DNA of 32,137 nucleotides from Octopus bimaculoides (GCF_001194135.2 NC_068985.1:38829968-38862104); one strand, 5' to 3'; counted from the stretch's first letter, positions 1,293 through 4,360 are shown. Notes: a model not told the origin generated them from the letters alone. Numbers and translations: made by a program.

Positions 1293-1463
1293 TCCTGTAT
1301 TTAAGAGATGAGGAATTATGTACATTACTTACATTTGACGGATATTTGTCCACATCTTGTTTGTTGTTAACACAATGTTTCGGCTGATATAACCTCCAGC
1401 CTTCATCAGGTTCCTTGAGGAAATTTCGAACTTGGGTTCTCATTCCTAAGGTATTTTTCGATG
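1293..1463 (-). mobile_element. Penelope-like 3' tail, repeat family H1, carrying a hammerhead motif
   Basis: Reverse complement aligns with 4209-4360 and is colinear with 17147-17314; contains CTGATGA-A-GGCTG..CAGCC-GAAAC on the minus strand. Confidence 0.85.
1369..1414 (-). ncRNA. Minimal type I hammerhead ribozyme motif, degenerate (H1 copy 1)
   Basis: Core CUGAUGA (1409-1403) intact, 5-bp stem II GGCUG/CAGCC, GAAAC present; stem I weakened (GGAAC) and ACGU changed to ACAU. Confidence 0.7.
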
Positions 1464-1573
1464 TTATTATTATTATTATTATTATTATTATTATTATTAT
1501 TACTATTATTATTATTATTATTATTATTATTATTATTATTATTATTATTATTATTATTATTATTATTATTATT
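1464..1573. repeat. (ATT)n microsatellite running into a gap
   Basis: Direct reading; one TAC interruption. Confidence 0.98.
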
Positions 1574-1770
1574 NNNNNNNNNNNNNNNNNNNNNNNNNNN
1601 NNNNNNNNNNNNNNNNNNNNNNNNNNNNNNNNNNNNNNNNNNNNNNNNNNNNNNNNNNNNNNNNNNNNNNNNNNNNNNNNNNNNNNNNNNNNNNNNNNNN
1701 NNNNNNNNNNNNNNNNNNNNNNNNNNNNNNNNNNNNNNNNNNNNNNNNNNNNNNNNNNNNNNNNNNNNNN
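1574..1770. other. Assembly gap (N)
   Basis: Run of N. Confidence 1.
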
Positions 1771-1814
1771 TTAGGATTAGTAGCCCGCGCTCTTAACCGC
1801 TACACCATATGCCC
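1771..1814 (-). mobile_element. tRNA-like SINE head, reverse copy (truncated by gap)
   Basis: Reverse complement GGGCATATGGTGTAGCGGTTAAGAGCGCGGGCTACTAA matches 1816-1846 with 2 transitions. Confidence 0.8.
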
Positions 1815-1815
1815 G

Positions 1816-1884
1816 TGGCGTAGTGGTTAAGAGCGCGGGCTACTAACCCCAACATTCCGAGTTCGATTCCAGGCAGTGACCTGA
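1816..1884 (+). mobile_element. tRNA-like SINE head with Pol III A and B boxes (not a functional tRNA)
   Basis: A box TGGCGTAGTGG at 1816-1826, B box GAGTTCGATTCC at 1859-1870, anticodon-like stem-loop GGG-CTACTAA-CCC at 1837-1849; followed by (AAT)n to ~1903. Confidence 0.85.
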
Positions 1885-2379
1885 ATAATAATAATAATAA
1901 TAATTATATATATATATATATATATATATATTTATAAATGAAGGTGAATATAGTTTGATGAAATATATTTAACCATTGGAATATTCTTATAACATAATAA
2001 ATTGTTTCCTAACATCATTTAACACGGATTTTTCTCTTACCTGATGAGCTTAATATCTGTATTGATTGAAAATATTATTTATATTTATGCAACCATATAA
2101 GTAATTTATTTATTATAAAATATAATAAAATAAATCACCGTTGCATGTCTTAATGTACGAAACAATGTGCTGCGATATATAACTTTTCCGATGGTTAAAT
2201 ATATTTCGTCAAACAATTTCTCTCTTCATTTATAACTTTATACACTCCTTATGGTTTTCTCTTTTGTCATACTATATATTCTATGTTTTATACAATGATA
2301 TTAAGGAAGGGTATTTATCTTTTTTATGCGTATCAATTTGAATCCATATATAATTATATATCTATCTATATATATATAT

Positions 2380-2518
2380 GACGGATTTCTTTCAGTGTCT
2401 GTCTACAGAATCCACTCACAAGGAATCAGTTGGACCAAGGTGGTAGCATTAGACACTTAGCCAAGTGCCACGAAGCGTGACCAGACCTGAAATCATGTGC
2501 TCCTCACCACAAAGTCAC
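2380..2518 (-). mobile_element. SINE family A, 5' half, strongly diverged
   Basis: GACGGATTTCTTTCAGT..ATCCACTCACAAGG..AGACACTT..CCAAGTGCCACG matches the reverse complement of 13510-13674. Confidence 0.75.
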
Positions 2519-2556
2519 TGTTTTCTTGACAAACAAAAAAATTATGCCAGTAATTG

Positions 2557-2688
2557 ACTGATACTTCAATTTATCGACTACAGAGAAATGAAGTGCAAAG
2601 TTGACCCCGTCGGAGATTTGAACTCGGAACGTAAAGAGCCAGAAGAAATTGCTTATGTATTATTGCTCCGATGCTACATCGACTCGGG
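2557..2688 (-). mobile_element. SINE family B, diverged
   Basis: ATTTATCGAC..ATGAAGTGCAAAGTTGACC..ATTTGAACTCGGAACGTAAAG aligns with 7129-7314 and 28151-28383. Confidence 0.75.
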
Positions 2689-3429
2689 CAATAAGCATCG
2701 GAATGACAGTACCCGTGTTAAATAGACAGTAGAATTAATAATATATATCGGATAATATATTAAGATTGATAAAACAGTTATTTATCCTAAATTCATATAG
2801 TTCCAATATAATTTAAATATGATGATAATGTTCATTTGTAAGATAAATCAAAATCAATCTGTGTTAAGCACGTACCCTCTCCTGTCTCACCTTCATAGTA
2901 CATATAATTTGTTGCGCGAAATTAAATGAAAATATCCAAATTATATAGAAAAGCGAAATAGCGATTTATTTTATTCGTTTTAACAATGCTATCAGAACGT
3001 CTTGTTAATGCTAAGGTGATACAGTTGGGTGGAAGAGCTCCAACGATATGATTAAATGGATAGTTTCCAGAAAGTAGTTCATTACATTAAAGTGAATGTA
3101 GATTTCGCATGTGCATTCAGTACAAGAGCACACAGAAGTTCGTTCTCTTGGAATGCTGCCTTGTTTCATTACATACCCCGGAAGGTCAGCCCAACCTATT
3201 GAACTGAAGGCTACTTCTTTTCTTAACTGAGAATCGGACGATGCTAGATGAATGCATTCTTTCTAGAACACAATTCACTTCTAAACACCACCTCCATTAT
3301 TGCTATCAACTTCGATGTCTTGGCGATTATTATGATGTCAGCGACGTCAATATAGTTCATCATTAGAGCTTATCATCGACGTTGCTGTCAGCGTCATCAA
3401 CATTGTCGTCCTCAGTTTCCTTAAACCTT

Positions 3430-3771
3430 CAGTATCTCTCTCATCCCCTCTCTCTTTTTCTGTCTCGCTCTCTCTTTTTTTCTCTCACACACACACAAAC
3501 TCTCACTCTCTGTATCTCTCTATCTAGCTTGCTAGCTAGCTAGTTAGCCAACTCTCTCTCCCTCTCTCTCTCTCTTTCTCTGTATATGTATATATATATA
3601 TATATACACACATCTATATATTATATATATACATACACACATATATATATATACATACACACATATATATATATACATACATACACAAATATGTATATAC
3701 ATATAAAACTTATATACATATATTTATATATATATACATATATATATGTATATATATATATATATATATAT
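3430..3771. repeat. Compound (CT)n/(CA)n/(CTAG)n/(TA)n microsatellite
   Basis: Direct reading. Confidence 0.95.
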
Positions 3772-4039
3772 NNNNNNNNNNNNNNNNNNNNNNNNNNNNN
3801 NNNNNNNNNNNNNNNNNNNNNNNNNNNNNNNNNNNNNNNNNNNNNNNNNNNNNNNNNNNNNNNNNNNNNNNNNNNNNNNNNNNNNNNNNNNNNNNNNNNN
3901 NNNNNNNNNNNNNNNNNNNNNNNNNNNNNNNNNNNNNNNNNNNNNNNNNNNNNNNNNNNNNNNNNNNNNNNNNNNNNNNNNNNNNNNNNNNNNNNNNNNN
4001 NNNNNNNNNNNNNNNNNNNNNNNNNNNNNNNNNNNNNNN
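3772..4039. other. Assembly gap (N)
   Basis: Run of N. Confidence 1.
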
Positions 4040-4157
4040 ACATATAGATATATATATATACCAGACTAAGCACATACATGTTAAACAAGGTGGGAAAATA
4101 GTACTCGAATACCGGAGGCAGAGTAATATGATTTATTATTAAAGTGTATCTAAATTT

Positions 4158-4208
4158 AATAATAATAATAATAATAATAATAATAATAATAATAATAATA
4201 ATAATAAT
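4158..4208. repeat. (AAT)n microsatellite directly 5' of the H1 tail
   Basis: Direct reading. Confidence 0.98.
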
Positions 4209-4360
4209 ATCGAAAAATACCTTGGGAATGAGAACCCAGGTTCGAAATTTCTCTAAGACACCTGATGAAGGCTGGAGGGTATATCAGGCGAAACGCTGTG
4301 TTAACAACAAACAAAACGAGGTCAAATATCCGTCAAATATAAATAATGTAAATAATGTAT
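4209..4360 (+). mobile_element. Penelope-like 3' tail, family H1
   Basis: CGAAAAATACCTTGGGAATGAGAACCCAGGTTCGAAATTT...CCGTCAAAT; inverted relative to 1293-1463. Confidence 0.85.
4257..4302 (+). ncRNA. Minimal type I hammerhead ribozyme motif, degenerate (H1 copy 2)
   Basis: GACAC-CTGATGA-A-GGCTG(10 nt)CAGGC-GAAA-CGCT-GTGTT; one stem II mismatch, and U16.1 changed to C. Confidence 0.72.

Follow-up and report, generated by a model that had tools for sequence, protein, structure and literature searches.

A candidate composite SINE of Octopus bimaculoides with a tRNA-derived head, an internal (AAT)n tract and a Penelope-type hammerhead tail

Can a short interspersed element (SINE) ride on something other than a long interspersed element (LINE)? 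SINEs are defined as LINE parasites, and Octopus genomes are unusually rich in them. The question is raised by a locus at positions 1293-4360 of a 32,137-nt stretch of Octopus bimaculoides DNA (the window, in which coordinates are counted from the first letter), where tRNA-like heads, (AAT)n tracts and tails with a hammerhead-like motif lie on both strands. We read these repeats as old, inactive copies of an Octopus composite SINE built from a tRNA head, an (AAT)n tract and a Penelope-type hammerhead tail, with a Penelope-like element (PLE) as its likely partner, and put the probability of this reading at roughly 0.55. That head, (AAT)n and tail form one element has about two chances in three.

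Three tails and two heads were counted in the 32 kb with nhmmer (Table 1), which found no additional degenerate copies of either in the window. Its boundaries are 1293-1464 (minus), 4207-4362 (plus) and 17147-17316 (minus) for the tails and 1770-1813 (minus) and 1810-1884 (plus) for the heads. The similarity among heads and among tails is far beyond chance, with nhmmer E-values between 1e-12 and 1e-58 overall. The left and right tails are inverted copies of one another, with an identity of 87.8% across 148 nt (nhmmer gave 1e-58 and 5e-53), as an initial, sequence-only reading of the locus had proposed, and every part which that reading named lies where it was placed; the third tail is an addition to it. 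The arms 1315-1547 and 4124-4356 are 85% complementary, and the left and right heads are identical at 33 of 37 positions. Both tails share the same 5′ junction, (AAT)n|ATCGAAAAATACC, and the internal (AAT)n is expanded in some copies.

The joining of the three parts into one unit is seen most directly at another locus. The predicted composite was translated and run against a protein collection, where the O. bimaculoides NUP42 model A0A0L8FR24 (P0003) was found to end ...PSSGVLGKFRTWVLIPKVFFDA-IIIIIIIII-QVTAWNRTRNLGVSSLCS. This C-terminus reads as tail, (ATT)9-10 and head on the antisense strand, in the order and orientation predicted from the composite. P0003 represents an independent locus, because its sequence differs from both window copies, and the contiguity of head, (AAT)n and tail, which the sequence-only reading had named as a check on its proposal, is found there. 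Altogether three further copies lie inside O. bimaculoides protein models (P0001, P0002 and P0003), and translated repeat pieces from the window match only O. bimaculoides proteins in this collection, at 85-86% identity.

Table 1. Positions of the candidate SINE's parts in the window.
Feature	Position	Strand	Details
Left tail module	1293..1463	minus	both ends full length, about 171 nt; alignment and nhmmer
Decayed minimal-hammerhead motif, left tail	1369..1414	minus	GGAAC/CUGAUGA/A/GGCUGG..UCAGCC/GAA/ACAU/U/GUGUU
Internal (AAT)n of left copy, (TTA)36.7	1464..1573	minus	tandem-repeat finding; runs into gap 1574-1770
Left tRNA-like head, positions 1-44	1771..1814	minus	cut by the gap; A-box-like TGGTGTAGCGG at position 8
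Right tRNA-like head	1811..1884	plus	A box TGGCGTAGTGG from 1816; B box AGTTCGATTCC; overlaps first 4 nt of left head (GCCC/GGGC) at 1811-1814
(AAT)8 directly 3′ of right head	1884..1908	plus	followed by (TA)16, no tail
(AAT)17.7 directly upstream of right tail	4157..4209	plus	no head upstream
Right tail module	4209..4360	plus	5′ boundary as in left copy; final 25-30 nt missing
Decayed minimal-hammerhead motif, right tail	4257..4302	plus	GACAC/CUGAUGA/A/GGCUGG..UCAGGC/GAA/ACGC/U/GUGUU
Third tail copy, 5′-truncated by about 10 nt	17149..17314	minus	hammerhead motif at 17231-17276; alignment and nhmmer

Within the window, the nearest thing to a whole copy is the left arm. A gap stands between its head and its (AAT)n tract, with pure (TTA)n on the left side of the gap and, on the right, the head cut at its position 44. 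Since the right head ends ...CAGTGACCTG and passes straight into (AAT)n, about 30 nt of missing head and further (AAT)n would fit the gap and would make the left arm continuous. The locus thus read probably contains a complete, gap-interrupted minus-strand copy at 1293-1814. It also holds a second head, joined to the first 5′ end to 5′ end and carrying only (AAT)8, and a separate (AAT)17-tail copy 2.25 kb away.

The head, about 74 nt long, is probably a decayed tRNA-derived promoter module and not a tRNA gene. Our test for RNA polymerase III (Pol III) boxes looked for the A box TRGCNNAGTGG and the B box GGTTCGANNCC at tRNA-like positions. In the right head the A box lies at position 8 without a mismatch and the B box at position 52 with one, which supports the proposal of a tRNA-derived head with Pol III boxes at tRNA spacing. 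The A box of the left head has two mismatches, and its B box falls within the gap. Local alignment of the right head with tRNA sequences gave z values of 7-11, and that of the truncated left head with Ser-GCT tRNA gave 5.9. Rfam matches to mir-885 at 1783-1840 were set aside as merely reflecting the head palindrome.

The tail is a module of about 175 nt in the three-copy alignment, running from ATCGAAAAATACC... to ...(AATGTAAAT)2-3...AATTCCTCATCTCTTAAATACAG. Toward its 3′ end (AATGTAAAT)2-3 is followed by ...TTCCTCATCTCTTAAATACAG, and the left copy shares a 23-nt terminal extension (...AATTCCTCATCTCTTAAATACAG) with the third copy and P0001, whereas the right copy stops 25-30 nt short. For the hammerhead we used our own implementation of the published text description of minimal hammerheads (PMC4209133). 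The majority consensus of the three copies, GACAC CUGAUGA A GGCUGG..UCAGCC GAA ACGU U|GUGUU, passes this descriptor, which matched in 0 of 300 simulated windows. The consensus also has all four features that the same paper names as lying outside its own descriptor: helix I is short, 15.2-16.2 is palindromic, G10.1 pairs with C11.1, and an extra nucleotide stands between 9 and 10.1. Its predicted fold contains helices I and II (z = -2.0), and the predicted cleavage-equivalent junction in the consensus tail is GAAACGUU|GUGUU; a dimer co-folding prediction was uninformative.

The individual copies are damaged in different ways. The left and right copies retain an unaltered CUGAUGA and GAAA core, and all three keep U17. 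The left motif, whose cleavage-equivalent site falls between 1374 and 1373, has ACAU for ACGU, a non-complementary 15.2-16.2 and a weak, interrupted helix I. The right motif has a helix II mismatch at 10.2-11.2 (CAGGC) and C in place of U16.1 (ACGC). The third copy keeps helices I and II and ACGU, with its core altered to CUGUUGA. Judged by a descriptor drawn from the paper's text, the majority consensus shows the full architecture of helix II, helix I and 15.2-16.2, and each single copy fails in one or two respects. The consensus gains support from back-translated P0001 and P0002, which depart from it at CpG sites of CCG-AAA-CGU in a manner consistent with CpG decay. The departures in the five known copies look like decay from an intact ancestral hammerhead.

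The motif shares its strand with the A and B boxes. The sense strands of the left and right copies have no run of T>=4, and the antisense strand has T5. The opposite orientation, an element ending in (ATT)n, was rejected because the promoter boxes and the hammerhead lie on the other strand and that strand is without T4 runs. The sense frame of the tail is open for about 55 codons at 1288-1443 (minus strand), and a 51-aa open reading frame (ORF) of this type is annotated as the O. bimaculoides protein A0A0L8FV75. In the dystrobrevin beta X1 and NUP42 models, pieces of the element have been either exonised or annotated in error.

Several results weigh against a composite SINE of this kind. For the head, ARAGORN called 0 tRNA genes, Rfam gave no tRNA match even at E<=10, and the predicted fold does not form a cloverleaf. 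For the tail, none of the three window copies passes the hammerhead descriptor unaltered. The Rfam hammerhead families (Hammerhead_1, _3 and _II, HH9 and HH10) gave no match at the gathering threshold, and relaxing the cut-off to E<=10, over 3.3 kb and over every motif taken singly, returned no hammerhead either. The minimal hammerhead of the sequence-only reading survives as a tail consensus of PLE-type architecture, but not as an intact ribozyme in any of the three copies. Coding remnants of a PLE reverse transcriptase or GIY-YIG domain were absent from the window by ORF listing, six-frame pieces and Pfam, and no target-site duplications could be defined. No PLE or pseudo-LTR (long terminal repeat) partner carrying this tail came to light either, in a search that could include no octopus genome or repeat library. 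The claim that both arms share the order head-(AAT)n-tail holds for the parts and their orientation, but the left arm is interrupted by the gap 1574-1770 and on the right head and tail are non-contiguous, split by 2.25 kb. A head remnant directly upstream of (AAT)17 was sought in the right arm, and none was found. The right head passes through (AAT)8 into (TA)16 without a tail, and a head with (AAT)8 only is more easily read as a short head-plus-(TAA)n SINE than as a composite truncated at its 3′ end. Beyond the window, contiguity is seen in one gene model only; a search of a representative protein library with the P0003 C-terminus returned only P0003 and two unrelated repeat proteins.

The spacer in the right arm is a mosaic of other repeat fragments, an inverted repeat like a miniature inverted-repeat transposable element (MITE), about 700 bp of unique sequence, microsatellites and a gap. 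Its length of 2.25 kb is an estimate only, because the gap 3772-4039 lies within a TA-rich microsatellite that continues on either side. The MITE-like inverted repeat (1925-2011 and 2156-2242), with arms 76-78% complementary and 144 nt apart, stands just past (AAT)8(TA)16.

Two separate elements lying side by side offer a rival explanation. One would be a short head-plus-(TAA)n tRNA SINE moved by a (TAA)n-specific Dong/R4-type LINE, and the other an independent 175-nt hammerhead-bearing PLE fragment. LINEs of the Dong/R4 clade are (TAA)n-specific. Such a LINE, abundant in octopus (PMC13282606), could be the source of the head-plus-(AAT)n form, and could also explain the many (AAT)n-flanked blocks of the window; the block at 19560-20148, for example, has (ATT)n at both flanks. 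Among the LINE groups recently active in O. vulgaris, Dong-R4 ranks first in abundance (PMC13282606), and PLE insertion is biased toward microsatellites (PMC8557442). The bare right head and the headless (AAT)17 before the right tail suit this explanation, as does the third tail, which is solitary, with neither (AAT)n nor head on its upstream side. Ordinary 5′ truncation explains the lone third tail equally well, however. The 5′ boundary of the tail against (AAT)n is identical in two window copies and P0003, and no tail has (AAT)n 3′ of it, though this would be expected of a split microsatellite. Head, repeat strand and tail keep one relative orientation in all informative cases, and the octopus composite ends in unique sequence and not, like Dong/R4 LINEs, in (TAA)n. 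We consider it unlikely that two separate elements are present, with the PLE fragment a solo pseudo-LTR or a retrozyme-like unit that favours microsatellites, SINE tails included.

The defects of the motif and the silence of Rfam would also follow if the tail came from a LINE or a CORE-SINE-type body and its hammerhead-like sequence were coincidental and functionless. The head does resemble the MIR/CORE-SINE head, scoring 35 where shuffled sequences score 14.5 +/- 2.1. At its 3′ end the tail closes with 17 nt (TTCCTCATCTCTTAAAT; 1293-1310 and 17149-17170) that agree with the MIR/CORE-SINE core (TTCCTCATCTGTAAAAT) at 15 of 17 positions, a tentative lead whose score is equalled by 3 of 500 shuffles. 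Octopus SINEs are, moreover, annotated mostly as tRNA-Core or tRNA-Deu (PMC8967140). A coincidence would nonetheless have to produce a consensus that passes a multi-part descriptor absent from the simulated windows, together with four features typical of PLE hammerheads and unexpected in a chance CUGAUGA...GAAA (PMC4209133). It would also have to leave departures in five copies, several of them at the CpG sites, that look like the decay of an intact ancestor. This origin of the tail is very improbable.

If the composite SINE is accepted, a PLE is a plausible mobilising partner. The link is drawn from the type of the ribozyme, from how common Penelope elements are in octopus (PMC13282606, PMC8967140) and from PLE-like habits (PMC8557442). 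The habits that could plausibly be recognised here are copies in inverted order, an extension carried by only some of the termini and a microsatellite neighbourhood; PLEs are biased to insert near microsatellites (PMC8557442). We infer Pol III transcription, a Penelope partner and any cleavage from sequence features. Transcription by Pol III would start at the head and read through the element, there being no T4 terminator on the sense strand of the two inverted copies. An autonomous element would then supply, in trans, the reverse transcriptase and endonuclease that recognise the 3′ module. This partner would most likely be a PLE, since the 3′ module looks like a piece of pseudo-LTR spanning the hammerhead. 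The hammerhead of a single-copy transcript would have essentially no activity, because a dimer is needed, and it may serve as a recognition structure and not as a cutter. Self-cleavage is doubtful, as all window copies are mutated and hammerheads of this type are reported to cleave weakly and only as dimers (PMC4209133).

Dispersed minimal hammerheads are common in metazoan genomes (PMC4209133), and the majority consensus of the octopus motif resembles those of PLEs. It has the same core, the unpaired nucleotide between A9 and G10.1, the G10.1-C11.1 pair, a 6-bp helix II and a 5-bp helix I. There is no helix III, and the palindromic ACGU is able to pair between two molecules. PLE minimal hammerheads likewise occur mostly as dispersed single copies and sometimes as opposite-strand pairs. 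The difference is that the octopus motif stands behind a tRNA-like Pol III head and (AAT)n, in a window without PLE coding sequence.

The premise of the sequence-only reading that hammerhead-bearing, Pol III-type SINE-like elements would be new was wrong. Sm-alpha and Sj-alpha of schistosomes are known examples (PMC6765202), and non-LTR retrozymes are already viewed as SINE-like PLE derivatives and proposed to be mobilised by PLEs (PMC7761336; bioRxiv 10.64898/2026.07.22.740005). Like the octopus element, Sm-alpha and Sj-alpha are short, non-coding, apparently Pol III-transcribed retroposons with a hammerhead. Their hammerhead, however, is of the canonical form, has a real helix III and is proven to cleave, and the elements are often in tandem, whereas the octopus motif, compared with them by description and not by sequence, is of the minimal PLE type and occurs in dispersed single copies. 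Non-LTR retrozymes are also non-autonomous, as units of 170-400 nt with type-I hammerheads, proposed to derive from PLE pseudo-LTRs (PMC7229834; PMC7761336; bioRxiv 10.64898/2026.07.22.740005). They form tandem repeats that make circular RNAs, with no Pol III head described in these papers, whereas octopus tails are single units with fixed ends. A tandem copy of the tail was found neither by Tandem Repeats Finder nor by a repeat finder in the window, and all three tails are single.

Octopus OR2, CORE-SINEs and mollusc SINEs share the modular head-body-tail plan with A and B boxes (PMC4758252, PMC5786205), and the (CA)n of the mollusc Haliotis MESC SINEs is a precedent for an internal microsatellite (PMC4758252). 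tRNA-derived SINEs with LINE-derived tails differ in that the octopus tail looks PLE-like and not LINE-like. The part that would be new is the fusion of a classical tRNA head to a PLE-type tail. We know of no tRNA-Penelope class in the usual SINE classifications. A search of a literature library gave no description of such a fusion, and a literature string search with the element sequences found no match.

The head-to-head arrangement of the two heads poses a question of its own. The junction joins them at their 5′ ends or 2-6 nt from these, and GCCC/GGGC at 1811-1814 may represent a 4-nt microhomology. The sequence-only reading had pointed out that PLEs often insert in inverted arrangement, and the literature bears this out: PLEs form head-to-head structures, and an inverted 5′-truncated copy often lies beside the upstream pseudo-LTR (PMC8557442). 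Dual minimal hammerheads have also been described on opposite strands, 100-700 bp apart (PMC4209133). In known PLE insertions an inverted 5′-truncated copy abuts the 5′ end of the direct copy, and one end carries an extension of 30-40 bp. Here, in a single case, one head-to-head junction (1811-1814) is accompanied by the terminal stretch of 25-30 nt in the left copy, the third copy and P0001 that the right copy lacks. The junction could have been made in one insertion, by an inverted double insertion of PLE type or by switching or snap-back of the reverse transcriptase at the RNA 5′ end.

The close meeting of the 5′ ends and the PLE precedents favour one event. The arms are not a perfect fold-back artefact, given their divergence (33/37 in the heads, 88% in the tails). 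On the other hand, this is a single instance chosen by eye. With a local density of about 1 head per 16 kb, chance alone would place an inverted neighbour within 10 bp of roughly 6 heads in 10,000, and a rough estimate gives about a hundred such pairs per 2.7-Gb genome. The left and right tails share no derived states; their 88% identity does not exceed that of the right tail with the unrelated third copy (89%), which speaks against palindromic copying. The right arm also lacks a contiguous tail. A single insertion is a tentative possibility, short of even odds. The stronger statement that the element is copied as a palindrome is left unsupported, with only one junction, arms no more alike than unrelated copies, and a right arm that needs 2.25 kb left unexplained. 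The full proposal, a tRNA-headed Pol III SINE family with a PLE pseudo-LTR hammerhead tail, moved by the PLE reverse transcriptase and GIY-YIG endonuclease and sometimes inserted as head-to-head inverted dimers, is doubtful. On the whole the sequence-only reading is supported in part.

Either the junction or the continuity of the left arm might instead come from an assembly mis-join at a repeat beside a scaffold gap. The left head fragment opens a contig that begins at the gap, occupying its first 44 nt, and the draft assembly is rich in gaps at microsatellites. A simple hairpin chimera would not leave arms with 4 mismatches in 37 positions and differing acceptor regions, however, and the contiguity of head, (AAT)n and tail recurs independently in P0003. 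A mis-join is quite unlikely.

The window around the locus is AT-rich, dense in microsatellites and SINE-like repeats, and has many N gaps. No Pfam domains were found in the element copies, ten window ORFs had no counterpart in the protein collection, and a search of the viral contigs of a public DNA collection gave 0 matches. A 24-mer match to a metagenome contig was dismissed as chance: the contig was a single, bacterial-looking one, and its flanks were without similarity. A second inverted structure, an imperfect fold-back of about 560 bp at 16341-16904, lies 245 bp from the third tail copy; its arm segments are 94% and 82% complementary, and its centre is a perfect 40-nt telomere-type palindrome, (CCCTAA)3|(TTAGGG)3, at 16629-16668.

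Trinucleotide arrays are unusually common across the window. At 19484-20234 an (AAT)15 is joined directly to (ATT)11, and the 589-bp block at 19560-20148, flanked by (ATT)n and then (TAG)19, resembles an insertion into a (TAA)n microsatellite in the style of Dong/R4. Long (TAG)n arrays lie at 4954-5033, 20178-20234 and 27100-27197, one of them joined directly to (ATT)n. Another, more abundant SINE-like family has copies at 1-240, 2346-2475, 13630-14150 and 29190-29730, and a different tRNA-related head lies near 13925-14040. ORF pieces at 6595-7187 (minus strand) resemble the C-terminal part of LINE ORF2 (GGRGL... and a Cys/His motif) and had no match in Pfam or the protein collection.

What the locus means depends on the partner. 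If the partner is a LINE, this is an ordinary decayed SINE cluster. If it is a PLE, the octopus element would possibly be the first SINE seen to ride on a Penelope-like element. A SINE carrying the hammerhead-bearing end of a PLE would then widen the LINE-only rule by a first non-LINE partner of this kind, and would link classical Pol III SINEs to the world of retrozymes and Sm-alpha. Such an element would also offer a handle on the role of the minimal PLE hammerhead, be it recognition or cleavage, and on the inverted insertions of PLEs. For octopus itself, a PLE-dependent family would bear on the history of the SINE expansion in its genome.

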